Shown here in pieces: positions 1 to 36,320 of a stretch of DNA of 64,000 nucleotides. The stretch covers positions 62,001 through 126,000 of the forward strand of contig CDRNST010000306.1 in NCBI GenBank assembly GCA_977016875.1. The letters are read 5' to 3'. A model generated the notes under the pieces. The model saw only the letters and a program-made list of their open reading frames with translations, made no database searches and was not told the origin of the DNA. The first letter of the stretch is position 1; each line of letters opens with the position of its first letter. A program made the translations under genes and the position numbers. Origin of the DNA: Pavona decussata (Eukaryota).

Positions 1-193
1 CACAAACACCAGGAAAGAGCCAAGGAATTATCGGCCAGCGGACCTAATCCGTGGAATTTCATACCAAGGTGTCGAGAGGATGGCGGGTATTATGAAGTAC
101 AGTGTCACTTGGGCACTGGTCAGTGCTGGTGTGTGGATGAAAACGGCAATGAACGCTGGGGTACGACAGTCTGGGGATTACCTGACTGCTCAG
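1..193 (+). CDS. Exon: thyroglobulin type-1 repeat 1 (5'-truncated by window)
   Basis: Frame 1: ...NFIPRCREDGGYYEVQCHLGTGQCWCVDENGNERWGTTVWGLPDCS; donor CAG|GTATGC, phase 1. Confidence 0.92.
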
Positions 194-3100
194 GTATGCA
201 AAATAATTGATATATTCTGCGACGATGTGTGCGTAATCGATTGAAAATACATTTGCTTTCTGTTCCCTTTTTCATACTCGAAGACCAATTAACGTCTGAG
301 AAGGGGCGGATTTCTTTTGGCTTTTTTTCTTTATTCTAATACAAACTCAGAGTTAAAAAAAATTCTTTTTAGGCGTACTTAGTTTTGCACTGGCATAGGT
401 CTCCAGAGAAGAGAAAGAAAGCTGATTCGTCGAATTCTCTGATGGGATGCTTTTTAAAGCCACCCACTTATTTTGAGACGCACTGCGAGTTGGGACATTG
501 TGAAAATATGGCGTAAATTTCAGTAAAGAACCTCATCGAACTCAGCCTTCTCGTACATCTTATCAATGTGCGAAAGGTCGTGGGTTTTCGTTTCAGTCGA
601 CAACATCTGCTCATTACAAATTCATTTTGTTTCCTTGCTACATAACCGACTTAACAGTACCCCAGTTTTTAGTAATATAAACGAGGGAAGGACATAAATA
701 CTCTTTATATCACTCTTTCTCTTTTAGCAAATATCACCTCTTGTCAGCGTCATAGAACACGATCCCTGGGCTTGGCAGGGATTCCACCCCCTGGCACATA
801 CGTCCCACACTGTAATCCTGACGGAAGTTATGGTGATGTGCAGTGCCACAGTTTCACTGGGCTGTGTTGGTGCGTGGATGAAAAAGGAAAGGAAATACTG
901 GGAACAAGGAAGTGGGGACGGCCCCAATGCTCTAGACTACTTTCAGGTAATTGGAGTAGTGCGTCGTTGACAGTTTTCGTCAAGTTAGATTAATGGAATA
1001 ATTTTGAACTAACAGTTACTTCAACTGGTAACTTCCATGCAGCATTTTGTGTTCAGGGTGTTTTAAACAGCAAAGCAGGGGAGAAAAAATAATATTTAAT
1101 TCAGTAACTTAGGCCAATTAAATTTGGCGATCGGGTAGTCGATCTGTATGGGTTGATCTGTATTTGTCTTGGTGTTTTCATTTCTCATCGTTCACATAGA
1201 AATATGCACAGAGATGTTAATAATGGTGAAAGCTACTTTCTTATAAAAATCTAGAGTTAAAATGAGAAGAATACGGCGAATATTCAGTGGAACATTTCCT
1301 TCCAAACTCCGTCTGATTTATATATCTCTGAGTCTGTGTGGCAAATGTTTCACTAAGGTAGAAGAGGAATTTTTCATTCTGGAGAAGACTTATAAATGTG
1401 TAAAACTTAAATTGCAAGTTTTTAGACCAAAATAATGTGCTTCGTTGTCAAAGACAAATGCAATACCAATAACCAAGCCTTGCGTAAAACAGCTACTTTA
1501 CTTTTGTATTCCGTGTTAGCATTGGAGTGCTTTTATTGGTTTACAAAATAACAATCTTTAAATTACTTGCTTACCCAGATCATGAGACTCCAATAGATCT
1601 TGGTATCTTAATTGACGCATCGGACGCAAGTGTAGCAACGAATTGGACAAGCCTGCTGAACTTTGTATCTTCAATCGTGGCTTCTTTTGACATTTCCTCC
1701 AATGGTACTCATGTTGGACTTATAGTGTTCAGTCGTAATGGAGACGTTCAGTTGTATTTCAACACTTTACAAGAAAACAACTTGACAGTCGAGAATGTTA
1801 AGAGGGTTGTAAGTAATCTCCGTCCTAAAGAAGGATTCAGTCGATTTGACTTGGCCATGTTACTTGCTGAAGAAGAGCTGTTCAATGAGGCAACTGGAAT
1901 GAGAAATGAGATACCGAAGGTACAAACTAATCACTGATTACTAAAGCAGAAGTGCTTATTCACATTTACAGCCTTATTTCAGTTTTTACTATGTTAAGTG
2001 CTGTAGCCAATCAGAGCCTTCCTCTGTTCTCTAGATTTTATAAAATATCAAGCCTGTGAAATATCAAACGACCTCATGGAAAGTTTTTAAAATTTCTTTG
2101 CTCTTCCTGCAATTTAATATGAAATCTCATCAGAATTACCAAGACCGTTAATACGATCGTATTCCTTAGACCAGAAAGGAACTTCATTAACGTTTACACA
2201 GCAAAACAAATTTCAATTTAGCGCCAAAATCATTCGTGGTAATTCCCGCACGCGAAACTTAGCCCCCTTTTTTGCACTTGCTTTCGTCGTTCCAGACATT
2301 GCTAACAATGTAAAATTTGGTGGGAATTGTTTGTTATTCACACGGGAATAGGTGGAACAAGACATTACAGGTTGGTTACAAGAAATGTCATTGTGAACCA
2401 ACAGCCTGACCCTACTTGCCTGGTATGTCGCCGAAGCTCACCAAAATTATTACGATTAGGTATAAGAATGGTGCCATGGCTCGATCAGTACGAATGCTGG
2501 GTAACGTATCCCAAGGGATTATGCATTAAGCAGTCGCAGCGATCACATGGATAGCTTTCCTTTGGTGATCGTGCAAGAAATACCAAAAAAACAACAACTG
2601 AAAAAGATCATCAAAGATTCTTTGACCAAGACAAAAAAAAAAAGAAAAGAAAAGAGCACTTCATCGCTGAGACAATGGTTTTATCGGTTGATCTGAGCTT
2701 TATTTATCAAAATAATGACCGTTTAATAAAACTTTAAAGTTATGGACTATATATGAAATTTTTAGCCATCTTTTAGGGAGTTTACCTTTGCTAATCAGAG
2801 GAATATCCTTTGTCTTTCGATACTCTTTTTTTTTTAATTAAAAGGAAACTCGCCTCAATAGTGATGTGATTAAGTAACGGACATAAAGTCCGGAGTTTGA
2901 TATTGATTTTTCCACTTAATACTTCTCTTAAGCAAATTTTCTTCAACAGTCTTATGTATGTATTAACTGCTAAAAGATGTATGTATTAACTGCTAAAAGA
3001 AGAACTGACTATTGTAAATGCGCAGTTTGTCAATTTGTGTTTCTAATTAACAATTAGATTTTGAGCTCGAGATTTATGTCGCGTGATAGCTGATGCGGGG

Positions 3101-6100
3101 GCAGCCCGAATCAGCTATCACGCGTAGAAATCGAGAGCGAATAATCTAATTGTATTAGTATAAATTTACTAGTCGGTCAAAACTTAACAAGTAAATTATC
3201 TATTGCCTTATCGCAGACACTTCGAAATCGCGACGAAGCGGCCGCGATTTTGTTGAAAACCGCTACTCACTATCTATCACAGAATAGATAGCGAGTAGCG
3301 TAGCCAATCAGAGAACGGCATTCGTAATAGAACACTGGTAGATTTATACTGATTGTCCATAGAGCTTACCTTCCCTATAAGTAGTGATTTGAATGGATAT
3401 GAAGAAAACATGAATGCATTGTCTGGAATGGAGGTATAGACAATGCATGCATATTGTATACAATTATTTTATAAACTTCTTGTGTCATTTTTTAATCACC
3501 TAGACCCTACTTCTAGTGACAACTAGTAGCCAGGCAAGAAATCAAGGACCCTATGCCCCTCTGACAGCTTCTGCTCAAGGCCTTAGAGACAGGGGGGTCT
3601 TCATTTACGCTGTTGGTATCGGAGACGAAATAAAGGTTCCTGAGCTGCTGGACTTAACGTCTGACTACATGAATGTGTTTACTTCTGATGATTTCAGTGT
3701 TCTCCAATCCAGTAGCAGAATCTTGACAGAAATAATTAAAAATAAAACAAACGTTGTTATAACTAAAGGTAAGTGAAAATGGCAAAAATACTACGACTTT
3801 CATTCCTTTGTTACAGCTGTTGTTTTTTTTTCTCAACTCTCAAAGCTTGTACAACCAAAATTTGACTGTGTATCATGATGCAAACTTTCATTCAATCCAC
3901 TGACTTAAGGGTTAAAGGAAAGAAAATATACGAAGTCCTACAAACAATAAATTCCCAGTACATTGTGATAATGAAGTTGCACTTCATTTACTCTATTCTC
4001 TAATATAAAATATTCTCTCCCAAAAATATAACTCGGATGCTGTGAGAATTCTGATAAATACAACTGTATCTTTTAGTTTGTATTTCTAACAACCTAGTTC
4101 CGATAATGTCACAAGCTTTTAGATTGCGATAACTTACTGCGTTTTACCTAAGTGTATAATTACACTTTTTTAGAAAAATTATGTAATATGCCCTCTGAAC
4201 CTGGTCAGCTTGGGTGTCTGGCATCTATATCGGCTTTCTACTTCGAAGCAGCCTCAGGCGAGTGTCATAGCTTTGTATACAGTGGATGTGGAGGAAATGC
4301 GAACAACTTCCCTTCATATGAAAAGTGCATGGAAAACTGTAAAGGTAAGAGAAATCTAAAATGGCACCGTCGGCAAATCAAAATATGAATACAACATTCT
4401 GAGTAGCATAATTAATGATTCATATTCGCTTTCATACAGCTTATTTTACTAATCAATCAACCAGTTAATGAGTCAATCCATCATTCAATTAACTAGTTTC
4501 GGTCTTAAGTGCAAGAGTGCGTTGGTCGTAAACAGTATCGTGTACAGTTAACGAGCATGATAATTTCTCATTATTTCCTTGCTCAAGGAGTTCTGCCGTC
4601 CTGTATCGGTGATAAAAAACGCGTCTCTAGTCTGCGCGTGGGTCACTTCACTCCGAAGTGCAAGACTAACGGCCGATACGAAGACGTCCAATGCTACGGA
4701 AAGACTGGTTACTGTTGGTGCGTTGACGAATTCGGCAAAGAAGTACCGGGCACCCGGGTGATGGGAATTCCTATTTGCAGCCTAGCAACTTGTAAGTTAC
4801 TTTTCCAGCTTGTGTAGCTTTCCGAGCTTTGAATTATATCCAACCATTTAAATGGAACAGTTGTTAGATTGCCTTTTTTCACCATCTTGTCTTGGGTTTG
4901 AAAACCGAAATTGGATTCCAGTGTGAATTCATTCCATCACATTGCTATACATATAGTAGTACCTGTTCCTCGCTACGAAGACTTTTCTGAGAGCTATCCT
5001 GTTTTCCTTCAATCATAAAGAAAAGAACTAGTGTTTAGAAATTGTCTAATGTCATTTTTCGTTCGTATAATTAGCCTTTGGAAAGCTTACCCCTTGTCTT
5101 GAAGAAAGACGTAAAACACTGGGCATGGATGGTGTCCCATCTGTTGGGAGATTTGCCCCTGAATGTAATCCAGATGGAGAGTATGCAAAGATACAGTGCT
5201 TTGGAAACACGAACTTCTGCTGGTGTTCAGACAAGCGCGGTTACGAAATTCCGGGGACGCATCGATGGGGAACACCTGAATGTACCGTTGAAGGTAAATG
5301 AAGACAAATAGCAATTAAAAAATTCCTTCTGCAGAAACAACCTTTTATTGCACCGTACGGTGAAATAATAGCTTATTAGGAATGGCAAAGTTCATGGAAT
5401 TTTATGAAAATGTACCTTGTGCCACATACGAGATATAACCCATTCCGTCTGCGGCACAGGCTAAGGAGAATGGCGAACAGCCAATTCATTACTGCGTCAC
5501 GATGCGAAAAGGAGATGTTGACTTTGTGCCATCATGAACATCATAATGGCCCTGAAAAACAGAGTGGGTCACTTGTATCATCGCTGCAGGTCGCGTCAGC
5601 GTCAGCATCAGCAAAAGTATAAGCCTCCGAGTATTCCCTACCTCTATTTATCTTCGGATGACATGTAAGCGCAGAAAGCGCCCGTCCCGACTTTTTTTTT
5701 CATATCCAAGGCGAAGGGACTAACGTCACAAATTTACCACAAGTATGGTATGGAAATTCACTTAACGTTTCCTTGGCATCCACTTTTACACTCTCATACC
5801 ATCTTAAAGTCCTTTCATTAGCTTTTATTACTGCCGCCTTGGCGGAATCAAGATGGCGCCTACTCGCAAATCGTTACAAAATTTTCAATTTTTGTGGCGT
5901 CATTGTCTTATTTAACGGTCCTCAAAAGAAAATTCGTTTCACGCACTATATATCCTGAAGTTTTGCTTTCATTTTGTTCACTTATTTATTTATTACTTAT
6001 TTATGTCACCGTATTGTTTTTTACAAATATGACTGCCTTCCTGAAATACATGCAAATTTCCGCCCGATTATTCTTTCATGTACAATTAAGATTGTTTTGG

Positions 6101-9100
6101 ACTCCGCCAGCTCCCATACAGTTTGCTTTGCTGTTAGTCCCTTTGTTCCCCAGCGGGTCACTGCAATTATTAAAGTTCTGTTAAATTATAACGTGATAAA
6201 AGTATGACTCAGCCTTTTGCTTTCAGTTCGTCCTGGTGCGTGTCCATTCATAACAGATCCAACTAAATGTCCAGCTCAAATGACTCAACAGACATGCTCA
6301 CAGGATAGTGACTGTCCCGAATCTTCCAAATGCTGTGACTGTGGATGTGTAAGGCGTTGCACGTCTGTTTCTCCAGATGTATCAGGTAAGAGATGTGAAA
6401 AGCGTATTCATAAAGTTGAATACTGGAAAAACCTCCTTTCGTCTGGATATGGCGAGAAATAACACTTGATGTCTGCCTTTTGCCAAGGGCAGTTTGTTGA
6501 AAGCTGGAAAAGTTTCCAAGGTACATCGGAGAATTTAGGAAGTGTTACCGAATATTACAGATCTGAAGAGCTTACGATTTCTTACCAACCGACTTTTTGT
6601 CTTTCAAGAATGTAATAGGGACAATACTTGTAGAATTCGAGCAAACAGATCTATCCAATTTTTATATCGATGTTTTTTTTGTCTTACTGTACCTTAGCTC
6701 CAGTTTCCAGCTGTGTCAGTGAGCATTTAAAGTCACTGTCGACGTCATGTCCTCACTTTAAAGCTACGGGGCGTTTCTTTCCAAATTGCAAGCCCGACGG
6801 TGGGTATGAGGAGCTACAATGTAATGAGCTCTATGGTGTTTGCTGGTGTGTTGACAAAAATGGCAATGAAATTACTGGATCTAGGCAGACTGGGAAACCT
6901 AATTGTGCGAAGCAAGGTGAGGAAAAATATAAAGCTAAACAAAAGACGAATAGCGAGAAATTAGGTTGCTTTATGAGTGAAACTCATTTACTGTGTTTTT
7001 TTTTATAAGATTTTTTATAAGCCTTAGACACAATACAATATTTACAGTACTACGCACTGCTTACAATACTTACTATACTAACTGTACATATACTAATACA
7101 ATACTAATACTTTTAATACTTACAGTGCTTACAATACTTAACATTTGTCACTTTTTTATAGTGCTTACAATATTACACATACATTTAGATTAACAGAGGT
7201 AAAGGAGCCAAAAGATAAATAATTATATAAGTAATCAACAAATAGCTAAATATACTAAATGAAAAACAAAAGGGGAGAAGGGAAGTTAAACAGCTAAAGA
7301 GGAGGTCTTTGTAGCGTATATATATAGACGAAAGTTATGTTAAATTCTCACTTTTCCATTGCAATTTTAGTTTAGTTAAAAACTGCAAACAGCTAGGGTG
7401 TTTTGCGTTCTGATGTTCTCGTCAGATTAAATTTGATACACATTAAAGATAAATGAAAGCAAAACTCACTCATAAAGTAGATTTTTATTTTGTTACCGAA
7501 AATGCGTTGGAGCAGAATGAATTAGAACAGCTGCTTAGTGTTAATAAAGAAGCGGTGTAATAAATAAACATGAGCTACTCATATTTTTTTAGCGTCCAGC
7601 GACACTCTTATACTATAGTTTCCTGATATGATTCAAATGTCTTATAGTTGTTATGACATCATGTGAGCGAGAGCGTAAGAGGGCTATGGGCATGCGCAGC
7701 AGGTCTCCCATTGGCGTGCTCGTCGCAAGTTGCCAGGATGATGGTTCATTTAACCCGACTCAGTGTCACAATGCAACTGGTTACTGTTGGTGCGTTGACA
7801 AGCAGGGAAATGAACTGAAAGGAACTCGGAAATGGGGAAAGCTTAACTGCACCGATATAGGTAATAGAAGGTGAAGCCAGTCGAATTTCCCATTGGTACC
7901 AAAAGAGGAGACCGGGAATGGTGGCGATTACTGGAGATGCTGCCTATTAAAGAATTTCATTATTGCCTTTTACTGAGAATGAGAAATGAAGAAAATGGGA
8001 TTTTTTTTTCACCGAGGGTAGATCGCCTTTTATGCGTGTGCCGTCAATCAAAGTTCGTACAATGATTACGTACAATGATACCCTTGTAGATGTGATATAG
8101 CCGGGATACCATAATCAAGGTTACTTTTTTACACCACAAATGCCTGACTTGAATGACCATTTTGCCAGCTTTAGGACAATTAGGCACTAAGGAACAACTT
8201 TTTGTTAGCTGTCGCTTCTGATTTGATGATCAATTTTTGTTGGTACGTAGTTCAATGACGGAGTGATAGAGGGCTTTAGCCAGCATGTTGTCTAGACTAT
8301 ATGTCGAAAACGAAGGTGCACCAGGTTAAAAAAAAAGGAATGCCAATGATTAAGATAGATAACAGTGAATCTTTGATGATGAAAAATGAAATTTTTCCTT
8401 TGTTTTTCATTTCCATGTTTCAAATAGGTAAAGCCTTGACCGTTTGCCAATCCCGCCATGACGAATGCCTAGATAATGCTCCTCCGGGACAGTTTATCCC
8501 GCGTTGTAAGGCTGATGGCTCGTACGAAGAAAGGCAGTGTCTTCAATCGACAGGAGAGTGTTGGTGTGTTGACAAAAACGGAAACGAACTACCAGGGACG
8601 CGGTCCAGAGAAATGCATGACTGTTCTTTACTTGGTTGGTTTACGATAATGATAATACTGCAAGTGTGTGTGAAAGCAACAACAATAACAAGAAAAGCAA
8701 AGTGCATGTGGTTGATCTTGATTCATAACAGCGGGCAAAAAGCTATTTTACAATCCGTATCTTACCTGTTCGGTCCCGAAGAACACGCTAAAATGTACTA
8801 AGTAATCTGTATACGGTTTGCCAAGAGTCAGTAGTTTTCGGCTCAGGCCTGAAAAGACAAACGGAATACACTGACAACTATTATATTACATTTTATTATT
8901 CAAGAAAAGAAACGAACATTTCTAGGTGTCTCTGACATCATTCAATATTTAATCTTTAATCTGATGCTTATGCCCAACGTGCTTTTGTTAGTCCTATTAA
9001 AAGACAGTCACAATTTCACACAATATATATGTTATAAGTAAGTCAAGGCTCAACCGCTTGACGTGAATTTCCATATAGTTTTACTCTTTCGCAGCTTGGC

Positions 9101-12100
9101 TTAGCCCATGCCAAATCAAGAAACGTCAGGCCTTGGGTCTGAGAGGTGTACCTGTTGTGGGACTACACGCACCCGAATGCAAGGCAGATAGGGGGTACGA
9201 TGAAGTCCAATGTCACGTGACATCCGGGTTATGTTGGTGTGTAGATGAGTACGGAAATGAAGTGAAAGGAAGTCGTATAAAAGGAAGACCGAGCTGTGGT
9301 AAGAGTCTTAGCGTGAACACTATCATCATCGTCTTTATCTTCGTCAACATAATTTTTGCCATGATAAACAGTTACAAGTATTCATTCTACAGAAACAAGT
9401 TGCCTTCAGTCGCTTTAGCTATAGTAACTTTTAAAACCAACTTCCGAAAGACTCAATCTTTTCTTGAAATTGACTCTTTACAGTGTGTAATTGTTTTTTT
9501 AGCACAGCCTCAAATAACTAAGTAATGTTTTTTTCAGTATATTATATCGAGAAGTCACTAGCAAATTTTCCTAGTGATGCGGTCAAGTATGTCAAGCATG
9601 GACTGACAAGTTGATCGAGTACTAAAGTGCTTGCCGGCGTCTGGGAGGGTTAAGCCATGCATTCGTGATTTATTACTTCTATCTAATAGGAAAAGAACCG
9701 CCATGCAAGAAGGAATCTGAAACGATTTTAGCGTCCTTCCCAAAACCTCCTCCGGGGATGTTTGTTCCTCAGTGTCGTAAGAATGGTGGGTACCAGGCCA
9801 CTCAGTGTGACAGCTCGACCGGATTCTGTTGGTGCGTGGATGAGTATGGGAACGAGTTAATGGATACACGAGTCAAGGGACAGGTTAACTGTTCAGGTTA
9901 AATAGTAGCTTCTTTTTGCATTTCTTTTAAAAAAGGATAACGATAACCGCAGTCAAGAAACAAGAAAACATTAACGTTCGATTCTTGGTAGCTCAGTGTT
10001 AATTTTTTAACCCAAATCACCGTTAAGGTTAGGAATTTTATCATATGAATTTTAGTTTTGTCAAGCCCAGTTCTCTATTGCATAAAACAATTAACTGTGA
10101 TTGTCATTTCATTTTCTTTATAGCCATTCAGTGATATGTTATATATATAATTTCTGGTACCGAATTCTATAATTCTATAAATTGCAATCAAGGTAGGTAC
10201 GTAGGTATTCTTGATATATTTATTTTACTCTTATGAGTAATAAGTTAGATTCTTCGGTATATGAAGGCCCTCATACGCACGCCAATGGGGCAGAGAATTA
10301 TGCGCCTTAAGAATTCTAATTATTGAGAACCCTAGACGGAGCAGAAGTAGGACTTAAGAAAATTATATCAATGTTATTCCCATCTTTCAGTTTTGACAGA
10401 TCAAAGGCTGTCATTATGTCATAGTCGCTACAACAAGGCTACTGAAGTCAACGAACAAGGGCATCATGCTCCACTGTGTGAACCTGATGGATCTTATAAA
10501 CAGATTCAGTGCAACTCAGCAACTGGAGAGTGTTGGTGCGTTGATAGGGAGGGAAAAGAGAAGCTAGAAACTAGAAGAGTTGGAATGCCTCATTGTCAAT
10601 CAAAAGGTATGTTTTCTAGCCTCCAGTAGCTATTATCTGTAATCTTTTGCTTGCGTGAAACGAATTATGTTTAAGGAATATTTCAGCAAAATGCCGTTTG
10701 AAAGTGCCTTTAACTTTGAAGTATATGCTAGATATATTTTACGATGATCACTGAAGTAATTTAAATCTAATGTAAATATAATGGCTCTTTACTGACGTAG
10801 CTTTGATGTGTATATAAATTTTACTTTCAGTAGATAGTAGTTAGTTGTTAAGGTTATCTAAATTGAGCTACTTTGAAGTAGCTTTGGAGTATATCTTCTT
10901 TAATACGTCTTTAAAATTCTGTCCATCGTTGATGTACCTTTAAAGTATCTAGAAACTACTTTAAGTAGGGCCTTTTGCGTCCCCTGGCCTTCAATTTTAG
11001 CTAAAGTATACCTTTCAGTACATCGATCATCGAGGAAGTTTTCAGTTTAAGCTAAAATAAATATAATATTTCTATAGTTGAGGTTAAAGTTATATTTCTA
11101 TAGTTTAATCCTAAAATAATATTTTTTATAGTTGAGATAGCTTTGAGGTGTATTTAACGTATATATTTTCAGTACAACGTTGATTTAGTTTTCAGGTATA
11201 CCTAGAGTATACGTTTAGTAAATCTTTATTGTGGATTTCAGCTACAGCTAAAGGATAGCTTTAGTACATCGCTGGGACAGCTTTCCAGCATACTTTTAGC
11301 ATATCGTTGATGTAGCTTTGAGGTATAGATAAGGTACGCTTGAAGAACATCGTTGAGGTGGCTTTCAGGTACAACCTCGTTCCCAGGGCTTCTCCCTTGA
11401 AAATAGAAAGGGGCAGGGAGAGACCCTTGCATTAGCTGGTCACATGCTTACAATAAATAATTCGGAGACGGCTAATTTATGCAACCCGCTGCCAAAATAA
11501 TGAATCAATCAATCAATCAATCAACCGATGTTTACTTGCCCCATTCAATGATTTCTTACAGAAGTATTGTTTTCTAATAGCCTATGAGCAGGAGCTCTCA
11601 ACAAACCCTACAAGTGACATTAGTAAATCGAAGAATTTTTAATCCTTTGACAGTTTGATCTTAATAATCTTGTGTATGGCGCAGTCAACTGCAAAAAGAT
11701 TAATGCTCGTAGTCCAGCCAGTGTTTCAGCTTTTGTGTCGGGTGCGTGCAAAAGCCGTAATAAATCGATATTGACAAGAACATTCATCCTGATTGTGGAA
11801 TTGCAATAAATGAAGCTGATTGCCTTCCAAACAACAGGGCGAATAGGAATTATTCTTGATACATTCAAAGGGCAGTTGCGGCGCATGCAAATAGAATTTG
11901 TTGATTCAAATATGTATGACCGTGACAAAACAAAGCGTCACAAGATGCTACGTGTCTGTTGAAATATTATCCAGACAGAAGCCGAAAATGTTTGCTTGCA
12001 TGAGGCGAAGGGTGACTAGCCTGCGAAGCAAGTGTTTCCGTGGAGTTTTCTGCACAAAAGCCAATTTCCGTATTTTGGATGCGCGCGAGAGCGCAGGCTA

Positions 12101-12591
12101 AAGGGTGACCGTTTCGGAAAGCATAGATCTCAGCAACAAAGGCTGTGAGAAATATAGCGCATTTAAATGAGCCAAACCAAACCTAGTATAAATACCCCAA
12201 ACGGCGTAAGGAGCATATTCGCAATCTTAACAGACAGAAAAAGACATCAAAGAGGTTTAAGGCGAAAGCCACAGGATTCATACTACAAAAATGACCTTGA
12301 CCTCATACTTTTGACAGTATCAAACCTTTAGTTGGTCTTTTGTATTTGAGTCTAAAGGGTAGACAAGGAACGATGCTTTTTTCTCCGGCTTGACAAGCAA
12401 GTAGTCAAGCAGGAGCTGGAATAGTAGCAATTTCCCGAAACATTTTGGGTGAATTGCAATATCATCTAGGCCTTCTCAAATCTCCTCACTTGAGGACTGG
12501 AGAAAACTGAAACAAGGAAACTTACGGTGGTTTAAGGTGCCAACCCAAGTCGAATGGCTACGGATACTTTCTCCTGTTTCCGCGATCATCG

Positions 12592-12637
<46 letters not shown>

Positions 12638-15378
12638 TATCACCAGCCAATATTAGGGTCCTTTTCCCGCCCCTTCCAAATTACAAGGGAAAAGTTCTCA
12701 AAACGAGATTGTTTCGGGTATAGCTAAAGTACATTTTAGTACATTGTTGAGGTAGCTTGCAGTTATACCTAAAGTTATACCTAATGTTTTGCTACAGCTG
12801 TGGCTAATTTAACTAAGCGTATACACTTATAACACACAGTCGGGACGTATTCGGGATATTTGTCACTTGAACCTTGTTTAATGGCCTAGCTTTCACAAGT
12901 CTCCTCCAGCGTAGTGCATTGGTAGAGCATCCAAACTAGTAATCGGAAGGTCTTAGGTTAGACTCCTGTTGGGAGAACTCGGATTTTCATTTTTCAAGTA
13001 TGCCTGTGCCACTGACTGAAAAATGCATCAATCATTTATTCACCTGCGTTAAAACATAGCATCACATTTCTTTTTCGATGATGATCGATGATCGATTATT
13101 GTCTTTTAACGTTAGTTTTGCCAAAAGAAGAAAAGAGCTGCGAGTTGCCCCCAGACACCGGACCGTGTAAAGCATACACGCCGTTGTGGTATTTTAACAC
13201 CACGACCCGGACGTGCGCTGTGTTTCTTTATGGAGGATGCGATGGTAACGGCAACAGGTTTCCAAGTTACTATGACTGTCAAGATAGCTGCAGTGGTAAG
13301 TTGAATGAAATCCATTGAAGCACGTAGATTACCACACTTAAGCATTAAAAGCACTTTTTTTAATAAGTAAAGTAGGAGCTTTTGCGTACTTATAAGGTAC
13401 TGTTCTCATAAATGAAAAGGAAAATTTATCTGCGGTTGTAATTTTGTGCTGATCAAGTTCTGCTCTTTACCCTTCTTTATTGGAAGAAAAAGGAAAAATA
13501 TGCTAACTTATCTTATCTACACTAAATCATTTTTTGGAGAAAAATGAAGTGCATGCATGAGTGAATGATAAGCTATAATTTATTGTGAGAACGGCATCTT
13601 TTCAATACAGAAGGGACGCAGTCTCGTTAAGCTTCTTTAGTTTAGTTGTTTCCTATTTGTTTTTCAGACGTTGTTCTACGATAATTTTGATTTTTTTTTT
13701 TTTTGTTCATGGCTTTATGATTGAAGAGCGAAAACATTTTGATTTGACTCTACGTCACAACTGGCCTGGCCAATCAAGAGGACATAAAAACAAGAGGATC
13801 CCTCATTAAAGCTTTTACTCGCGGAGCAATACTATGGTTTCTTTCTGTTACAGGTCGAAATTTAACATTCTGTGAGTTGCAGCGTGAGATAGACAGCGCA
13901 CGCTCGAGGGATTTTATTCCTCGTTGCAAAGAAGACGGCAGATTCGAAGAAGTACAGTGCCAGCGAAAGTCTGAGGAGTGCTGGTGTGTAGATGAAGCTG
14001 GCATGGAAATTCCCGAATCAAGGACTATTGGATTGCCTGAATGTGATAAACCCGATGGTAAGGGATTCTTTTTTACTCGCGTTTAAGGGTTATATCACAC
14101 CATCCTGACTTTGTATGCCACGTCGGGGTGGTGTTATCAAAGCCTAGCTGCCTGTTTTAAACACCCCGCAAGATAAATCAGTTGTCTGGGACGCACGTAG
14201 GTACGTATAGGTTAACCTTGTCGTAATTTTCGAGGGTATTAAAAATGTAGAATCACAGCATCTGGCCCTTCATCTTGGATGGTGGATGGTAGTATAACCC
14301 AAGCACGGGAAATCTTTTCCATGACAGAAGCCTCTTTTCATTATCGCTTGAGAGTGTCTCCCCATGTGGCCTGGGCTTAGGCCTTATATAAATTAGTAGA
14401 GGACGTCAAGGAACAACGCTCAGGAACTTTGGAATTAAGTAACAGAGTAGGGGACGTAGGCCGCAGTGAGGTAATACAACCGGTTTCCTCGAGGGAGAGG
14501 AATGCAGTCAATGGCCTACAGTAAGCTGTTGCAGCGTCTCTAATGATCTTTTTGCAGTGACACAGAGAATCCTAGGAGTATGCTTGGATATTTGACACAT
14601 TAACCTGGAATAATGGTCTAGCTGCCTCGAGTTTCCTGTAGCTCAGTGGTGGACTATCCGAACTAGAAATAAAACTCCTGCTGGGAGAACCCTAATTTCT
14701 TTTTCCGAGTACCGTATGTCTGTGTCACTGACTGAAAAATTCATCTATCATTTAATCACCTGGCTTAAAACAAAAACTTCACATTCATTTCAATGAACTG
14801 GGGTCTATAGAGTTGAAACGTAACCGACCGCCACTGATTTGCAATTCCGGACACAATCCCCACTACACGTGACGTCTACAGTAAACATGTTGCGGTCGGT
14901 AACGGAAGCATCTTTTGACGCTCTTCATATGCATTTACGTGAAAGCGCCATAGGTCTGAATACACTCGGATTTAACTACTGCATTCGGCTGGGTAAGGTT
15001 GGGATCCTTGTACATTGAAAAAAAGNNNNNNNNNNNNNNNNNNNNNNNNNNNNNNNNNNNNNNNNNNNNNNNNNNNNNNNNNNNNNNNNNNNNNNNNNNN
15101 NNNNNNNNNNNNNNNNNNNNNNNNNNNNNNNNNNNNNNNNNNNNNNNNNNNNNNNNNNNNNNNNNNNNNNNNNNNNNNNNNNNNNNNNNNNNNNNNNNNN
15201 NNNNNNNNNNNNNNNNNNNNNNNNNNNNNNNNNNNNNNNNNNNNNNNNNAAAGAGCAAAAAAAAAAGTTGACGATAAGGTTTTCGTTCCCTCTAGGAGAG
15301 TTTGTGGTGTGCTCCCATTTAACCATCTATTTTTCTTTTTTTCTAGGAGAAGGAATTGGCAGCCGAGGAGCAAGATAA
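1..15378 (+). CDS. Multi-exon gene (5' end outside window): modular Tg1 x11 / vWA / Kunitz x2 / WAP protein, putative multi-class protease inhibitor (equistatin-like repeats)
   Basis: 16 exons joined by GT-AG introns give one continuous frame; repeated C..P.C...G.Y...QC....G.CWCVD..G.E..G......P.C motifs; candidate last exon 15347-15378. Confidence 0.9.
728..946 (+). CDS. Exon: thyroglobulin type-1 repeat 2
   Basis: ttttag acceptor; TSCQRHRTRSLGLAGIPPPGTYVPHCNPDGSYGDVQCHSFTGLCWCVDEKGKEILGTRKWGRPQC; donor CAG|GTAATT; 219 nt. Confidence 0.92.
1579..1919 (+). CDS. Exon: von Willebrand factor A domain, N-terminal part
   Basis: cccag acceptor; PIDLGILIDAS...FDISSNGTHVGLIVFS...ELFNEATGMRNEIPK; donor AAG|GTAC, phase 0. 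Confidence 0.9.
2954..2999. repeat. Perfect 23-bp tandem duplication
   Basis: ATGTATGTATTAACTGCTAAAAG x2. Confidence 0.9.
3050..3352. mobile_element. Intronic palindromic repeat (Crypton-like non-autonomous element)
   Basis: Hairpin ACAATTAGATT...GCGTGATAGCTGA-loop-TCAGCTATCACGC...AATCTAATTGT (3050-3153), then AGTATAAAT ... ATTTATACT inverted motif; family name from recall. Confidence 0.45.
3504..3768 (+). CDS. Exon: von Willebrand factor A domain, C-terminal part
   Basis: cctag acceptor; TLLLVTT...AQGLRDRGVFIYAVGIGDEIKVPELLDLTS...VFTSDDFSVL; donor AAG|GTAAGT, phase 1. Confidence 0.9.
4174..4344 (+). CDS. Exon: Kunitz/BPTI domain 1 (P1 Leu)
   Basis: CNMPSEPGQLGCLASISAFYFEAASGECHSFVYSGCGGNANNFPSYEKCMENC; ttttag / GTAAGA; 171 nt. 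Confidence 0.92.
4588..4791 (+). CDS. Exon: thyroglobulin type-1 repeat 3
   Basis: SCIGDKKRVSSLRVGHFTPKCKTNGRYEDVQCYGKTGYCWCVDEFGKEVPGTRVMGIPIC; tandem AAG/GAG acceptor (4588 or 4591); donor GTAAGT. Confidence 0.88.
5075..5293 (+). CDS. Exon: thyroglobulin type-1 repeat 4 (frame not in ORF track)
   Basis: TPCLEERRKTLGMDGVPSVGRFAPECNPDGEYAKIQCFGNTNFCWCSDKRGYEIPGTHRWGTPEC; ttag / GTAAAT; 219 nt. Confidence 0.9.
6227..6385 (+). CDS. Exon: WAP four-disulphide core domain
   Basis: RPGACP...KCP...CSQDSDCPESSKCCDCGCVRRC; tttcag / GTAAGA; 159 nt. Confidence 0.9.
6698..6916 (+). CDS. Exon: thyroglobulin type-1 repeat 5
   Basis: SSCVSEHLKSLSTSCPHFKATGRFFPNCKPDGGYEELQCNELYGVCWCVDKNGNEITGSRQTGKPNC; cttag / GTGAGG. 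Confidence 0.9.
7648..7860 (+). CDS. Exon: thyroglobulin type-1 repeat 6
   Basis: TSCERERKRAMG...SCQDDGSFNPTQCHNATGYCWCVDKQGNELKGTRKWGKLNC; tatag / GTAATA. Confidence 0.9.
8428..8634 (+). CDS. Exon: thyroglobulin type-1 repeat 7
   Basis: LTVCQSRHDECLDNAPPGQFIPRCKADGSYEERQCLQSTGECWCVDKNGNELPGTRSREMHDC; aatag / GTTGGT. Confidence 0.88.
9095..9298 (+). CDS. Exon: thyroglobulin type-1 repeat 8
   Basis: SPCQIKKRQALGLRGVPVVGLHAPECKADRGYDEVQCHVTSGLCWCVDEYGNEVKGSRIKGRPSC; tcgcag / GTAAGA. Confidence 0.9.
9690..9896 (+). CDS. Exon: thyroglobulin type-1 repeat 9
   Basis: PPCKKESETILASFPKPPPGMFVPQCRKNGGYQATQCDSSTGFCWCVDEYGNELMDTRVKGQVNC; aatag / GTTAAA. Confidence 0.88.
10391..10606 (+). CDS. Exon: thyroglobulin type-1 repeat 10
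   Basis: SLCHSRYNKATEVNEQGHHAPLCEPDGSYKQIQCNSATGECWCVDREGKEKLETRRVGMPHC; tttcag / GTATGT. Confidence 0.9.
12017..12100. mobile_element. 84-bp MITE TAGCCTGCG...CGCAGGCTA nested in the previous element
   Basis: Perfect 9-bp TSD AAGGGTGAC on both sides. Confidence 0.85.
12584..12641. repeat. (ATC)n microsatellite
   Basis: Direct inspection. Confidence 0.95.
12836..13075 (+). mobile_element. tRNA-related SINE, copy 1
   Basis: A-box-like TGGTAGAGCATCC, B-box-like GGTTAGACTCC; body shared with 14575-14790 and 37392-37458. Confidence 0.65.
13116..13295 (+). CDS. Exon: Kunitz/BPTI domain 2 (P1 Lys)
   Basis: CELPPDTGPCKAYTPLWYFNTTTRTCAVFLYGGCDGNGNRFPSYYDCQDSC; gttag / GTAAGT; 180 nt. Confidence 0.92.
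13854..14057 (+). CDS. Exon: thyroglobulin type-1 repeat 11
   Basis: LTFCELQREIDSARSRDFIPRCKEDGRFEEVQCQRKSEECWCVDEAGMEIPESRTIGLPEC; ttacag / GTAAGG. Confidence 0.9.
14575..14790 (+). mobile_element. tRNA-related SINE, copy 2
   Basis: GTAGCTCAGTGG A-box; CTCCTG.TGGGAGAAC...TGTCACTGACTGAAAAA...ATCATTTA.TCACCTG shared with copy 1. Confidence 0.65.
15026..15249. other. Assembly gap (224 N)
   Basis: Run of N. Confidence 0.99.
15347..15378 (+). CDS. Candidate terminal coding exon (GEGIGSRGAR-stop)
   Basis: Strong polypyrimidine acceptor ttttcttttttctag; the phase-1 join reads GGA GAA GGA ATT GGC AGC CGA GGA GCA AGA TAA; AATAAA at 15658-15663. Confidence 0.5.
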
Positions 15379-17909: not shown

Positions 17910-19644
17910 TTAAAAACTGGATCATTCTATAAGGCAATTCAATTCCAGAGATTTAATTGGCTTAGCAGCCATGGTATATGAGCCATTAAACCATTTTGCG
18001 GAGAAATAGCGACCATTAAATTGTCTTCTGGTTGTTCTTGCAAAGCGAAATCAGCAAGATTTCTGGGTTGTTTTTAATAAACCAGTTGTTCCACTCGCGC
18101 TTGTTGGATATGCTATCTATCTATACACTAATACCGTTTATCTTTACGTAGACCAACTGGCAATAGGAAAATGTAAAGATCCAACTGTCAGATACACAGA
18201 ACACATTAATGCAATTATGTTTAAAGAAGTGTGATTTTATCGACGTATTGTGCACGCTTTAAGAAAAAAGAACTCAGTAAATTTGCTTCTTTATAGAATA
18301 GTGTATTTCAAAATGCAGGGACTTAGTTTCCCTTTTAAAAGGCTTTTTTTTATTAAAGGAAATATGTTTTATCTCCAACTGTGAAATCGATCTCGGACCA
18401 TAAGTTTGGACTCACGTAAATACTTCACGTTGACTTCGCAGACAATGGTTCTAGTTTCAAAACAAACGCGTTTAACCAATAAGCGTAGTGTGGTTTCCTT
18501 TACAGACAGACAAGCTTCTTCTTGTATTAACAATTTACTCTTTTGTTTTGGTTTGTGCCCAAATTTAACAACTCGTCTGCATCGTTCGAAAGAACATCCT
18601 TTGGTTAATGGAATTTAACAAAATTGGGGTTTTACAGCCATTACTGATCGATGACTTGAAACTTGGTCCTGAAGCTTTACCATCGTACAGCACTACTGAA
18701 AAGCATATTGATAAAGGTGTGTGTTTAAACGAAGTATGCATATTATGTACATAATAGGGTGGTTCGCTTCGAGCAAAAAAAAATGTTTCTAGTTAATGGC
18801 TTTAATTAAGGCGTACTTTAACAACGATGCAAAAGATCCACCAGTTAATTTAAATGCTGTCAAAAGCGCTTATCAAGTGGAAAGTTCAACTTTCGTTTTC
18901 AACGTATGTCATTTCGCCTTTTCAAAGTTTTACACAAAGAAAAAACTTGGGAACTACAAAAAAGCAGGTTAGATAATGAATTTCCTCAAATACACGTTTT
19001 AAACTGCCGACAAAGTGCATCAATGATATAAACCCAAAGTGTTTTTGAACAGAAAACATTTTCGCCACAAAACATAAATATTTAATAGTTTTGCCTTTCG
19101 TTAGCTCAATGTAGTCTGTTTCACTCTCGCAAATGGTTCTATTTGTTCATTCACGATCATTTCGATTGCTTTCCAAAGCCAAAAAATACCCTGCCTTGAC
19201 ATACCCTACGTTTAAGACACACTGGTTCAATATTACAATTTAAGATATCGTAAAAGTATCGCAGTCTGCGTTATTCATATTCTTTATTGATCGAATAACA
19301 TTTCCTATAGTTTTTTTAGTTCTTTCTCAGAAACGTTATCTTGCCTGAGTTTTATTTTGACTATTTGAATATTTGAAGGTACTGTGTATGTTATATTTAT
19401 AACAGTTGTGGATTTTTTTCCTGTGTATTTAAAACTTGCTGTTCTGCGAATGACATGGAGGCTCAAACCATCCGCCATTTTGACAGTGTTTTCGTCTGAC
19501 AAACTTAATTGTAAGGAAACGTATCGCAGGGAAAAAAAGGTTTATAGATTTGGATTTTCTCAACCTTTTGACTCTCATCCTGCTATTATGCGTTCCGTAA
19601 TTCTAATTTAGTTCTTTCAATTGTTTGTTTTACAGCTGAGCGAA

Positions 19645-20610
19645 ATGAATACTTCAGAGGAAGCAGATACACTAAGCCATCTGTCACAGCCATTACCGGA
19701 CAGATCAGCCGCATTTATCCGTTCAATAATCTTAGCTGCCTGGAGCATAGTGTTCTCAGTAGAAGCGGGACTGATAATAGTTGCAAATATTTATACCATC
19801 ATTTTCCTGATAAGAGGGCATTTTGATCGAGTCAGATATTTCGCTGTGAGTTTCGCCTTCATTGACATCATGAGAGGCTGTACTGCAATTGTCATAGTAC
19901 TTGGTTTGGCGAGGTCCAGCGGACATAGTTGCAGATTAGATTACCAAGAATTGCACCTCGCTTTGCAAACCTTTTGCGATGTATTTTCCATGTGCTTCTT
20001 GACAGCAATTTCGTGCGACATGTATTACAGAACATTTTGGCCCCTGACACATAGACGCACTCGGGCAAGATGTTACATGTCAGCAAACTTTGCAATCTGG
20101 ATTATTTCAATGACTTTAACTATGTTTTTTGCATTTTCCTTGGGCGGCTTCTTCCAGCTTCTAATAGCCGATATAGTAGTATGGTTTACCGAGATTATCA
20201 ATCTGACAGTTATTTGCACAACTTATTTTCTGATTTGGCAACAAATCAAATTTCGTGAATACATGAATCAAGTTTGGAGGATCGAAAAACAATACGTAAC
20301 ATTTGCAAAGGCGTTTTCACTTTGTGCCATTGTTTATCTTGTCATATGGCTGCCGATTGAGGTTTTGGAAGGGCTATTCAGCCACTTAACCAATAGTTTA
20401 GACGTCTCGTGCAATGGTTTACTTTTTATGAAGTTTCTAAAAATTTTCTGTTCCACTGTAAGCCCGGTGATATATTTACGGAACCTTTCGCAGTTCAGCA
20501 AGCCGTGCTCTTGCACCATAATACTCAAAGACAGATCAATATATCTTCCTGATAGCTTACCGCTGATATCACTCCGATCCGCCTCCTATCTAATGACAGG
20601 TTATGATTAA
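19645..20610 (+). CDS. Class A (rhodopsin-like) orphan GPCR, 321 aa, atypical DMY motif
   Basis: 7 hydrophobic segments; TM1 N (IVANIYT), TM2 D (FAFID), TM3 AISCDMYY..FWPL.HR, TM4 W, TM6 IWLP, TM7 SPVIY; splice acceptor 9 nt before the ATG. Confidence 0.85.
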   Translation: MNTSEEADTLSHLSQPLPDRSAAFIRSIILAAWSIVFSVEAGLIIVANIYTIIFLIRGHFDRVRYFAVSFAFIDIMRGCTAIVIVLGLARSSGHSCRLDYQELHLALQTFCDVFSMCFLTAISCDMYYRTFWPLTHRRTRARCYMSANFAIWIISMTLTMFFAFSLGGFFQLLIADIVVWFTEIINLTVICTTYFLIWQQIKFREYMNQVWRIEKQYVTFAKAFSLCAIVYLVIWLPIEVLEGLFSHLTNSLDVSCNGLLFMKFLKIFCSTVSPVIYLRNLSQFSKPCSCTIILKDRSIYLPDSLPLISLRSASYLMTGYD

Positions 20611-34100: not shown

Positions 34101-35294
34101 AATTCGTTGTAGTTTTCGTTGTTTCAGTTTGTTTTCGTTTATTATTCCAGTGCTTAGTCACTCTGAGTTGATATTTCAAAGATGCCGTTTGGACCGTTAA
34201 TGATGACCTTGGGGTTATATTGGTCTAGCATGCAAATGTTAATTGCTTTGTTTGGACTAAATCTTTCAAGGAACCAAAAAGCCTCATTAATGCGAGGGAC
34301 ACTTCAGAAAATATATGTATTCCTTTGTTTCTGGAACGTCAGAGTCAACTTGAAAATGAAAAGAGGGGAGATAAGCGGACACCTTTCATTAACAACGGAA
34401 GGCAAATAGCCTGTAGGAAGGAAGGCAAAAGGCCTTATTATGCAACTCCAAGGGTCCCTCATTGTTAATTAATTTAATTTAAAACAGGTAACTTCCATTT
34501 TGTCATTTTTGTTGCAAAAGAAACTGGCATCGTGTGATTAACGGCGTCGAAAGAGGCAGTTTTGGAAGCAAATATATGACAGAGAGAATAGGAATTGCAA
34601 TAGGAAGTCAAGAGAAAAAAAGAACAATTGTATTTTCATTTTGAAACGTTCCCTGTGAATGCGCGCCCTTTCCCCGCATCGTACTGTGGTTTCGAATTTC
34701 AATGGTTATTCTCATACTCACTAATTTAGTGACGTAAAGATTTTGCTGGAAGAAAATATCAATACTTATACACCTGATCGTAAAGAATGTTTTGGTGTGT
34801 CATTAAGCTTGAAGTAAATAAAAATCAGATGTTTAAGAAAACAAAAGACCAAGAAGCTTCCGATCCAGGTCATTTAAGCCTTTTGATTGCAGATGTTCTC
34901 AATAAGACTCTGTTGAGCTATTTGTTCTTTTTGTTTCGACTAAATGTCCCCATAAGTACAACAAAATACGGTGAAAAAAAATTAATATTGCACCTAAATA
35001 ATTCAAGATGAGATATTTTAACTGATGGCTGAGAATCCTTCACCCCCATATAGACCCTCTTGTAGTTACTAAGATACCAAACACCTACGCTTGAATTTCC
35101 AAGTGTAATCGCATGATAAATTGCTTCCACTGCCTTTCATAGCTTTAAGTGTAGTGGATTTACTGAAATAATCAGGCAGTTGTCATATATGAAGTGTTTG
35201 GTTAGTTAAACTACTGCTCTCGCGTCTTACTTTCACAGAATAAGCTTCATCCTTGATTATTTATAAGGCTTTTTTTTTTTTTTTTTCAGAAAAG

Positions 35295-36320
35295 ATGAAC
35301 AACAACAGCATCATGAACGCGACGCGAGAACGTCAAAATACAACCAGTTTCTCAAAAATGGGTCTTTCTTCATTCCTTCTGTGGTGCACTGCATTTGGAG
35401 CTGTCGACATCGCCGTTGTTCTCACGAATGTCTTCGAATTACTCGTATTTTATTCAAACAAATTCCTGTTGAGGAAGCGACATAACCAGTTCTTGATCGT
35501 GTTAGCCGTCTCGGATATTATGGTTGGGGTCATTGTGATGCCGTTGTATATATATCAACTGATATCCTGGTGGGTCAACGCGCATGAAGTTCTGCAGAAC
35601 TCTGTATTAGAAGTCTTTAGAGCAATGGACATATTGTCTGGGTTTGCTTCCATCTTCACTCTGGTGATGATTGCAGCGGACCGTATCTACGCAATAGTGT
35701 TTCCACTTTACCACAAGGTCCCTCCAAGGGGAGTTTATCCTTCCATGATAGCCTCCGTGTGGATACTTTCAGGATTAGTGATGGTTTATTACTTCTTGTC
35801 TAAGCTTGAAATACTTCCCCAAGAGGCATTTATCTATCTTTTGCTGCTCAGTATCTCCCTGTCCCTTCTGGTTATTTGCATATCTTACTTGCTGGTTTGG
35901 GTTCGAGTGAAGTGTTTTACAATATCTCACGGATTAAAGGGAGCACCATTTAGGGAGAGACGCTTAGCGGAACTGTTATTCCTCATAACTGTTGTTTTTA
36001 TTTGCACTTGGCTGCCATTTCATGTTCTAAACTTCATCTTCCATTTTTGCAAATCGCCGAGCTGTCATCCTCCATCTGCGTCAGTTGTTTACTTCAGCAA
36101 ACTTTTACACTACAGTAACTCGTTTTTGAACCCTGTTGTTTATTGTTACAGAAACAGCGAGTTTCGAAGATGTTTAAAAAGACTCGTGAAGAATGTGACA
36201 TCACAGTCAAAACCAGCGCTACCGGAAAGGGGAGGAAGAGGGAGGATCAGGGAGCGAAAACTGCTACTGGAAAGACAAGATGCCTTTCGCCGCATTCTAG
36301 TCAAAGAAAGCAGAGTTTGA
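35295..36320 (+). CDS. Class A orphan GPCR, 341 aa (aminergic-like D3.32)
   Basis: N-terminal N-glycosylation sequons; LAVSD (TM2), IAADRIY..FPL (TM3), TWLPF (TM6), NSFLNPVVY (TM7), EFR helix 8; acceptor 5 nt before the ATG. Confidence 0.92.
   Translation: MNNNSIMNATRERQNTTSFSKMGLSSFLLWCTAFGAVDIAVVLTNVFELLVFYSNKFLLRKRHNQFLIVLAVSDIMVGVIVMPLYIYQLISWWVNAHEVLQNSVLEVFRAMDILSGFASIFTLVMIAADRIYAIVFPLYHKVPPRGVYPSMIASVWILSGLVMVYYFLSKLEILPQEAFIYLLLLSISLSLLVICISYLLVWVRVKCFTISHGLKGAPFRERRLAELLFLITVVFICTWLPFHVLNFIFHFCKSPSCHPPSASVVYFSKLLHYSNSFLNPVVYCYRNSEFRRCLKRLVKNVTSQSKPALPERGGRGRIRERKLLLERQDAFRRILVKESRV

Follow-up and report, generated by a model that had tools for sequence, protein, structure and literature searches.

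How much of a gene lies at the start of this stretch of coral DNA, and what would a protein built of so many protease-inhibitor modules do? The window, that is, the whole stretch that was analyzed, comprises 64,000 nucleotides of Pavona decussata (contig CDRNST010000306.1 of assembly GCA_977016875.1, here C306, positions 62001-126000), and its position 1 is C306:62001 on the plus strand. An earlier note made from the letters alone (the original prediction) had described positions 1 to 15378 as an undescribed inhibitor polyprotein of thyroglobulin type-1 (Tg1), Kunitz, WAP and vWA domains. We find that the window holds the 3' 44% of a plus-strand gene of about 39 kb. Our explanation of the whole, to which we give a probability of roughly 0.6, is that the gene encodes one secreted chain that would reside in the extracellular matrix as a multivalent buffer against several classes of protease.

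All sequence searches were run exon by exon, with Pfam gathering cut-offs of 20.6 bits for Tg1 (PF00086, MEROPS I31) and 23.8 bits for VWA (PF00092); the Kunitz and WAP families are PF00014 (MEROPS I2) and PF00095. Within window 1-14083, stop-free plus-strand frames carry CWCVD-type motifs, and 16 of 16 blocks matched named Pfam families, in the very order predicted: Tg1-Tg1-vWA-Ku-Tg1-Tg1-WAP-6xTg1-Ku-Tg1 (Ku, Kunitz). Scores were 56-71 bits for the 11 Tg1 exons, 63.5 and 72 bits for the two Kunitz exons, 32.9 bits for the WAP exon, and 57.4 and 20.7 bits for the two vWA exons. Fifteen of the 16 exons pass the gathering score alone; the exception, the C-terminal half of vWA, is identified by its being spliced to the N-terminal half and by its covering profile positions 109-170 of 174, where the N-terminal half covers positions 1-106. 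With splice sites either verified by RNA or predicted, the exons in the window total 3,429 nt, or 1,143 amino acids, in agreement with the predicted length of more than 1140. The first of them has no methionine, and its first cysteine lies just upstream of base 1.

Transcript data place these exons in one gene. Four sequencing runs (X1, X6, X8 and X15) were mapped to the 5.8-kb stretch C306:60650-66450, which straddles the window start; X1, X6 and X8 come from three independent studies, each with its own single-nucleotide polymorphisms, and X15, a coral metatranscriptome, is the only run recorded as RNA. An intronic repeat and side contigs apart, the cover by X1, X6 and X8 in this stretch was confined to exons, and five GT..AG joints fell at the predicted sites (C306 60991/61984, 62193/62728, 62946/63579, 63919/65504 and 65768/66174). 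The joints therefore connect the window's first exon to an upstream Tg1 exon and put Tg1, vWA and Kunitz exons on one RNA. Splicing was seen directly for exons 20-25, and loose contig ends enter the neighboring exons on either side, a four-cysteine Tg1 exon at C306:~60105 and the Tg1 exon at window 4588. At 5,739 nt, the X1 contig extends 1,869 nt 5' and 2,444 nt 3' of the exons in the mapped stretch; judged by exon lengths, it would reach from the Tg1 exon at C306:~50,340 to 213-228 nt past the last Tg1 exon, or across some 27 exons. An assembled contig is no proof of a single molecule, and it is the spliced joints that are direct evidence for the six exons of the mapped stretch. RNA mapping had been proposed as the check on the single-gene claim, and the claim held, with spliced contigs from three studies linking the exons and one of them spanning about 27. 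One X1 contig leaves exon 21 at window 153 and continues as exon 32 (window ~9230); this jump is most likely an assembly-graph chimera of similar Tg1 exons, exon skipping being the less likely reading.

The gene extends well beyond the window on its 5' side. The 30 kb upstream contain 20 further Pfam-confirmed domain exons on the same strand and at similar spacing (one WAP, one follistatin/Kazal, one I-set Ig, two Kunitz and 15 Tg1), so that the predicted inventory, correct for the window, falls short of a gene that has 37 exons and starts 24.7 kb further upstream on C306; the whole is 2.3 times what the window shows. The full model of 37 (or 38) exons runs from C306:37,280 to 76,057 or beyond and, counted as 37 exons, keeps an open frame from end to end, the window holding exons 21-36. 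Its order is signal peptide, WAP, follistatin/Kazal, I-set Ig, two Kunitz, 17 Tg1, vWA, Kunitz, two Tg1, WAP, six Tg1, Kunitz and Tg1, giving 26 Tg1, four Kunitz, two WAP, one follistatin/Kazal, one Ig and one vWA, 33 of them modules of protease-inhibitor type. All 36 domain exons match their Pfam families (35 of 36 by the gathering score alone), and the 26 Tg1 exons score 27.8-71.1 bits. In a profile scan of the 602-Mb assembly, the scope of all our genome-wide profile scans, C306 carried 26 Tg1 exons, all within 46,695-76,044 and none elsewhere on the contig. Almost every module is one phase-1/phase-1 exon with borders a few residues outside its first and last cysteines; vWA is made of two exons separated by a single phase-0 intron. 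The predicted product has about 2,590-2,600 residues (7,765 nt to the last donor) and a mass of ~285 kDa, with 212 cysteines and 23 N-x-S/T sequons. We hold the structure of exons 11-36 with high confidence.

The head of the gene required separate consideration. The search for a signal peptide by 5' extension succeeded insofar as it gave a candidate first exon, C306:37280-37352, with an ATG, a hydrophobic 24-mer and the donor AG/GTAAGT; of 41 candidates gathered under loose criteria from both strands of 94 kb, no other had a perfect donor. The joint of the head to the array is deduced, with no RNA contig across it. The exons could instead form two adjacent genes, a short one resembling WFIKKN that begins with the signal peptide and ends with Kunitz 2, and a second one that carries the Tg1 array and with it the exons in the window, as would fit with RNA contigs that end at about exon 11, short of the head, with a stop 15 codons into read-through of the Kunitz 2 donor, and with one ATTAAA in the interval that follows. 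However, the first Tg1 exon opens at a phase-1 acceptor (every border here is phase 1) and lacks an in-frame methionine, and the 1.8-kb interval between Kunitz 2 and that exon contains no rival signal-peptide-like first exon, even under very loose criteria. In a more distant coral, for which we walked 38 kb of a contig (ENA ERZ25067556) reached via exon fragments from other corals and hereafter called the relative, Kunitz 2 ends in a strong donor, CAG/GTAAGC, and the strong acceptor of the first Tg1 exon follows only 600 bp downstream. The relative also has a signal-peptide-like exon with a phase-1 donor about 4 kb before its WAP exon, and this exon sits in the only extended (weak) DNA alignment to our candidate. 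Two further points oppose a division into two genes: a larger array in the same genome, on contig C54, is also preceded by an inhibitor cassette, and the best match of the Nematostella protein NvThyr-1, WFIKKN2, implies a head and repeats on one model (PMC12549020). Taken together, phase, interval and cross-species evidence make it very likely that the head is joined to the Tg1 array in one gene, and two genes are correspondingly very unlikely.

At the 3' end, the C-terminus may be either of two short tails (options a and b in Table 1). The predicted end at 15378 is the stop of the micro-exon of option b, and the predicted C-terminus is therefore reached through an intron that holds the only run of N (15026-15249). 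This run has A-rich flanks and lies 969 nt past the end of the last domain exon (14057), outside the gene under option a and in the last intron under option b, where the frame across it is irrelevant; no known exon is interrupted. Open reading frames (ORFs) that seem to cross the gap are artefacts of N being translated as X. In parallel with option b, an analogous acceptor in the relative leads to DLGGRRNR and a stop, and the length of the X1 contig fits both options, with an end at ~14270-14285 (a) or at ~15560-75, just before an A-rich run (b). We found no domain exon beyond the gap: Tg1 matches on C306 end at 76,044, and when the 5.5 kb that follow the last Tg1 exon were compared with the relative by BLASTN and TBLASTX, no conserved segment emerged past the last Tg1 exon of either coral, which leaves both options standing. 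Either tail has at most 10 residues and is not hydrophobic, and thus neither provides a transmembrane or glycosylphosphatidylinositol anchor, as the original prediction had said of its own candidate C-terminus. The next ORF downstream of the gene is at window 19612.

Comparison with the relative showed that the architecture is conserved module by module. The relative has the full set of 36 domain exons, in the same order and on a single strand, within a gene span of 25.5 kb. Each exon best matches its positional partner (52-79% identity; 60% for the Ig exon), with the second-best exon far lower (34-54%), which indicates that the repeats are old and individually maintained and not recently amplified or homogenized. 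The modules are under purifying selection, with a ratio of nonsynonymous to synonymous substitution rates (Ka/Ks) of 0.03-0.30 per exon and 0.12 overall and with Ks saturated near 1.5; the most constrained exon is that of the head WAP (Ka/Ks 0.03).

The individual modules appear, from comparison with solved structures, to be ordinary members of their families. Among Protein Data Bank entries, the Kunitz domains are closest to SmCI, TFPI, bikunin and collagen VI, the first three of which are active inhibitors; the Tg1 domains to thyroglobulin (the best match), saxiphilin and the p41 fragment, with matches also to IGFBPs and Trop2; the follistatin module to agrin and follistatin; and the Ig domain to generic I-set domains. 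Tg1 modules of type 1A have six cysteines with QC and CWCV motifs, and those of type 1B have four cysteines. The six-cysteine Tg1 framework is found in 25 of the 26 repeats, 18 of these with CWCVD and seven with C[FY]C. The remaining repeat, number 19, has four cysteines and brings the C[FY]C subtype to eight; its Cys3 and Cys4 are lost together, equivalent to one disulfide, and the same loss is seen in the ortholog. In the C[FY]C subtype, the motif is preceded by a two-residue deletion and the last loop is longer. CWCVD and C[FY]C repeats take turns along the N-terminal array, a pattern suggesting that it grew by duplication of a two-module unit. All four Kunitz domains (63-73 bits) have six cysteines, and their P1 residues are K, R, L and K here and K, K, L and Glu in the relative, counted as conserved in three of the four; the Leu loop of Kunitz 3 is identical. 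WAP1 (34.7 bits) has eight cysteines and WAP2 (32.9 bits) nine.

The term polyprotein did not survive the examination of the linkers. The 34 inter-domain linkers have a median length of 9 residues, and none (0/34) contains R-x-K/R-R; without a furin site in any linker, the product reads as one chain, and with no processing sites between domains we rejected the polyprotein reading. The sole R-x-K/R-R site outside a domain, RLRR (C306:39,912-39,935), lies between the predicted signal peptide and WAP1, is kept in both corals and may mark a short propeptide removed by a convertase. This conserved site, along with the occurrence of equistatin and Kunitz peptides in the secretions and mesenteric filaments of anemones (PMC11857728), would suit a precursor cut into single-domain inhibitors, as LEKTI is, or a component of venom, nematocysts or digestive secretion. 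We regard such a product as extremely unlikely given the short linkers devoid of dibasic processing motifs, the fact that every repeat holds its position across species, and the recovery of related proteins from mesoglea preparations (PMC12549020).

The closest known proteins point to the matrix. In Nematostella vectensis, NvThyr-1 (NV2.14419), NvThyr-2, NvThyr-3 and NvvThy are reported as core matrisome proteins enriched in the adult mesoglea; NvThyr-1 is annotated "WAP," with human WFIKKN2 as its best SwissProt match, NvvThy combines vWFA with Tg1 repeats, and thyroglobulin-repeat proteins are counted among the protease inhibitors that rise in the adult (PMC12549020). The coral protein resembles them as a secreted anthozoan Tg1-repeat protein with a WAP/WFIKKN2-like or vWFA part, a likeness that fits supplementary files 2 and 8 of that study (PMC12549020). 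Tg1 and vWA are also given among the commonest domains of uncharacterized proteins in sea-anemone mucus and tissue proteomes (PMC11857728). Equistatin of Actinia equina is the cnidarian precedent for inhibition, acting on papain-like proteases and cathepsin D (PMC11857728), and it shares with other thyropins (the p41 invariant-chain fragment, saxiphilin) and with the coral repeats the six-cysteine Tg1 fold with CWCV; however, it has only three Tg1 domains, compared with 26 of two subtypes here, joined by other inhibitor families and matrix modules. Arthropods have compound Tg1 proteins with Kazal, Kunitz, antistasin, WAP and SPARC domains (PMC3407033), which likewise put Tg1 and serine-protease-inhibitor modules on one chain, but they are much smaller and have neither a WFIKKN-ordered head nor vWA. 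Thyroglobulin, too, is a long secreted chain with many Tg1 domains; it differs in being a hormone precursor with 11 Tg1 and a cholinesterase-like domain and no Kunitz, WAP, Kazal or vWA.

The first five modules stand in the same order as in vertebrate and lancelet WFIKKN1/2 (GASP-1/2), where WAP, follistatin/Kazal, Ig, Kunitz and Kunitz likewise follow a signal peptide; it is from these two groups that the canonical protein is documented (PMC6071037). The coral gene differs in having no NTR domain at the locus and about 2,100 extra residues after the cassette. NTR (PF01759) had no match on C306, and the genome's NTR exons, at least 12, share no contig with any Kunitz match. Nor are the coral Kunitz and follistatin modules closer to WFIKKN than to other families: among the structure matches, WFIKKN1 Kunitz 2 (2ddi) ranks 11th at 59.5 bits, and the WFIKKN2 follistatin domain (6maa) is the weakest listed, at 20.5 bits. 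With no NTR and no specific sequence kinship apparent in these structure matches, we rejected an identity as canonical WFIKKN.

This head nevertheless raises the main alternative for the function, namely, that the protein is mainly a structural or ligand-binding component of the matrix and not a working inhibitor. Its head would trap ligands of the TGF-beta family, the Tg1 array, rigid and resistant to proteases, would be a spacer or a binding platform, and vWA would mediate assembly. The WFIKKN order, the strong constraint on the head WAP (Ka/Ks 0.03) and the proximity of the follistatin-type module to agrin and follistatin all favor such a role, as does the general knowledge that many Tg1 proteins are not inhibitors, with IGFBPs and Trop2 among the structure matches. 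The Nematostella relatives, moreover, are classed as core-matrisome extracellular matrix glycoproteins (PMC12549020). On the other hand, the seven serine-protease-inhibitor modules keep intact cysteine frameworks, three of them with a conserved P1 and one (Kunitz 3) with an identical loop; the NTR domain, which contributes to ligand binding by WFIKKN, is missing; and the head modules show no specific kinship to WFIKKN in the structure matches. We therefore consider a mainly structural or ligand-binding role somewhat unlikely.

In the explanation that we prefer, the inhibitor chain would form a beads-on-a-string series of modules within the extracellular matrix, in the mesoglea or possibly in mucus or the calcifying matrix. 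Serine proteases would be the targets of seven modules, the four Kunitz domains (P1 K, R, L and K), the two WAP domains and the Kazal domain, which would engage the enzyme as a substrate does, in the canonical manner. The 26 Tg1 domains would be thyropins that block papain-like cysteine cathepsins by inserting like a wedge into the cleft of the active site; some of them would perhaps inhibit the aspartic cathepsin D, as equistatin does. Anchorage to matrix partners would fall to the Ig, follistatin and vWA modules. The individual conservation of all the repeats points to a separate target for each. Inhibition of three protease classes is an expectation drawn from the domain families, and a location in the matrix is plausible by analogy; a matrix-resident, multi-class protease inhibitor is the most likely role, at about even odds.

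Several observations tell against this explanation or parts of it. To our knowledge, the Tg1 modules of nidogen, SMOC, testican, IGFBP, Trop2 and thyroglobulin are not inhibitors, and we know of no sequence rule that separates inhibitory from noninhibitory Tg1. The P1 residue of Kunitz 4 is Lys here and Glu in the relative. The metal-ion-dependent adhesion site (MIDAS) of vWA is incomplete, with DASDA here and DASDS in the relative in place of the DxSxS motif and with the Asp of "TDG" replaced in both (TTS and TSN); any binding by this domain is probably metal-independent. On the transcript side, the RNA contigs extend no further 5' than about exon 11, short of the WFIKKN-like head, and there may be a head-only or array-only isoform; X15 covered only the intronic repeat and no exon; and the length of the X1 contig fits both C-termini. 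Finally, the kinship to NvThyr and NvvThy rests on their names and on best matches in a supplementary table (PMC12549020).

The gene has relatives within its own genome, which holds at least 115 Tg1 exons; Tg1-array genes are an expanded family in this coral. A second, far larger same-strand array at C54:1,521,870-1,627,565 (plus strand) has about 60 Tg1 exons and is preceded by follistatin/Kazal (1,521,870), Kunitz (1,524,146) and WAP (1,527,316) exons. It uses the same blocks, with an inhibitor cassette before the Tg1 array and one module per exon, whereas the C306 gene, with 39 kb and 26 Tg1 repeats, has one vWA, the complete W-F-I-K-K head, and Kunitz and WAP modules inside the array. More Tg1 clusters, some with Kunitz exons interspersed, occur at C15:2,877,459-2,894,628 (minus), C486:1,400,784-1,404,954 (minus), C54:0.99-1.04 Mb and C47:1.22-1.23 Mb and on C28, C86, C44 and C103.

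An exhaustive protein search with the vWA exon returned close matches (55-75% identity) that are exon-sized genomic ORFs of other corals running into an intron; the long top matches, pure vWA-repeat proteins or TSP1/PAN/cystine-knot proteins, have no Tg1 and were set aside. The same search found no full-length relative in the protein library; since genes on eukaryote contigs in that library are predicted one ORF at a time, this absence carries no information on novelty. Queried by word search, the upstream Tg1, Ig and head WAP exons matched only coral exon fragments, with neither a spliced transcript ORF nor a sea-anemone sequence among the matches. We found no literature on this coral gene. 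To call the system undescribed is nonetheless too strong in view of NvThyr-1 and NvvThy in the Nematostella matrisome (PMC12549020), the compound inhibitors of arthropods (PMC3407033) and the larger paralogs in the same genome: the gene adds a new and well-conserved member to an anthozoan family already catalogued, though uncharacterized.

The features of the gene in the window are collected in Table 1.

Table 1. Exons and alternative 3' ends of the Tg1-array gene in window coordinates (scores are Pfam bits; ph 1, phase-1 splice sites)
Feature	Position	Strand	Evidence and remarks
Exon 21, Tg1 repeat 16 of 26	1..193 (true start 16 nt earlier, C306:61984)	+	62.8 bits; both borders by GT..AG joints (X1, X6, X8); upstream partner Tg1 exon C306:60773-60991
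Exon 22, Tg1 repeat 17	728..946	+	71.1 bits; RNA-joint borders; ortholog 79% identity
Exon 23, vWA N-terminal half, phase-0 end	1579..1919	+	VWA 57.4 bits, profile 1-106; RNA joints; imperfect DxSxS (DASDA)
Exon 24, vWA C-terminal half	3504..3768	+	VWA 20.7 bits, profile 109-170; RNA joints 1919/3504 and 3768/4174; "TDG" Asp absent in both species
Exon 25, Kunitz 3, P1 Leu	4174..4344	+	63.5 bits; RNA joint; loop PGQLGCLAS same in relative
Exon 26, Tg1 repeat 18	4588..4791	+	63.8 bits; start is loose end after Kunitz exon in X6 and X8; phase 1-1
Exon 27, Tg1 repeat 19	5075..5293	+	60.4 bits; ph 1; ortholog 82% identity, Ka/Ks 0.05
Exon 28, second WAP	6227..6385	+	WAP 32.9 bits; ph 1; ortholog 77% identity
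Exon 29, Tg1 repeat 20	6698..6916 (acceptor 6698 or 6704)	+	62.5 bits; ph 1
Exon 30, Tg1 repeat 21	7648..7860	+	70.1 bits; acceptor located
Exon 31, Tg1 repeat 22	8428..8634	+	66 bits; ph 1
Exon 32, Tg1 repeat 23	9095..9298	+	56.3 bits; ph 1
Exon 33, Tg1 repeat 24	9690..9896	+	69.3 bits; ph 1
Exon 34, Tg1 repeat 25	10400..10606 (acceptor 10391 or 10400)	+	61.8 bits; ph 1
Exon 35, Kunitz 4, P1 Lys (Glu in relative)	13116..13295	+	72 bits; ph 1
Exon 36, Tg1 repeat 26	13854..14057	+	63.5 bits; phase-1 donor G/GTAAGG; relative has GT at same codon position
C-terminus option a, possible read-through tail KGFFFTRV + TAA	14058..14086 (TAA 14084-86)	+	ATTAAA 14238-14243; tail not kept in relative
C-terminus option b (original prediction), possible 32-nt micro-exon, ...GEGIGSRGAR + TAA	15347..15378 (TAA 15376-78)	+	strongest downstream acceptor, polypyrimidine score 0.94

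The introns contain several repeats. The vWA intron holds, at window 3041-3354, a dispersed, MITE-like repeat (resembling a miniature inverted-repeat transposable element) of about 312 bp with an internal inverted segment and more than 1,500 candidate copies at 93-95% identity; its extreme RNA depth in all four runs is the sum over these copies. In the same intron, a separate, wholly intronic 191-nt X1 contig (window 2098-2288, depth 8) could be a minor transcript, a retained piece of intron or a repeat, and an Rfam scan of the intron gave no match. A 46-nt motif at window 655-700, in the intron before exon 22, has many copies of 96-98% identity genome-wide, often as same-strand pairs about 520 bp apart and, on contig C169, in a series of seven spaced at about 2,350 bp; it belongs to some tandem or dispersed repeat. 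In the 2.5-kb intron between exons 34 and 35, a CAT/ATG trinucleotide microsatellite (window ~12,570-12,640) yields spurious poly-His, poly-Ser and poly-Ile ORFs, and poly-Met ORFs on the minus strand. Downstream of the gene lie three intronless ORFs, 35244-36317 (plus), 44626-45525 (minus) and 19612-20607 (plus); two are rhodopsin-family G protein-coupled receptors (Pfam 7tm_1, 97 and 116 bits), and the third is hydrophobic, with no Pfam match.

The head of this gene, ordered as in WFIKKN and lacking NTR, is relevant to how the WFIKKN/GASP regulators of myostatin and GDF11 arose. One may speculate, although we think it improbable, that the W-F-I-K-K cassette is ancient and heads giant anthozoan thyropin arrays whose 26 repeats have been in place since deep coral divergences, that the 33 heads each recognize a protease or ligand of their own in the mesoglea or calcifying matrix, and that chordate WFIKKN is a cut-down descendant in which the array was swapped for NTR. 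Gene models are easily cut short at this locus, which is represented in public protein collections by exon-sized pieces only. If the function proposed here is correct, the protein would be among the largest compound protease inhibitors known, with four inhibitor families on one matrix-bound chain and 33 modules each conserved in position and sequence between coral lineages, and it would offer a handle on extracellular proteolysis in coral growth, wound repair, symbiosis and defense, and perhaps in skeleton formation.

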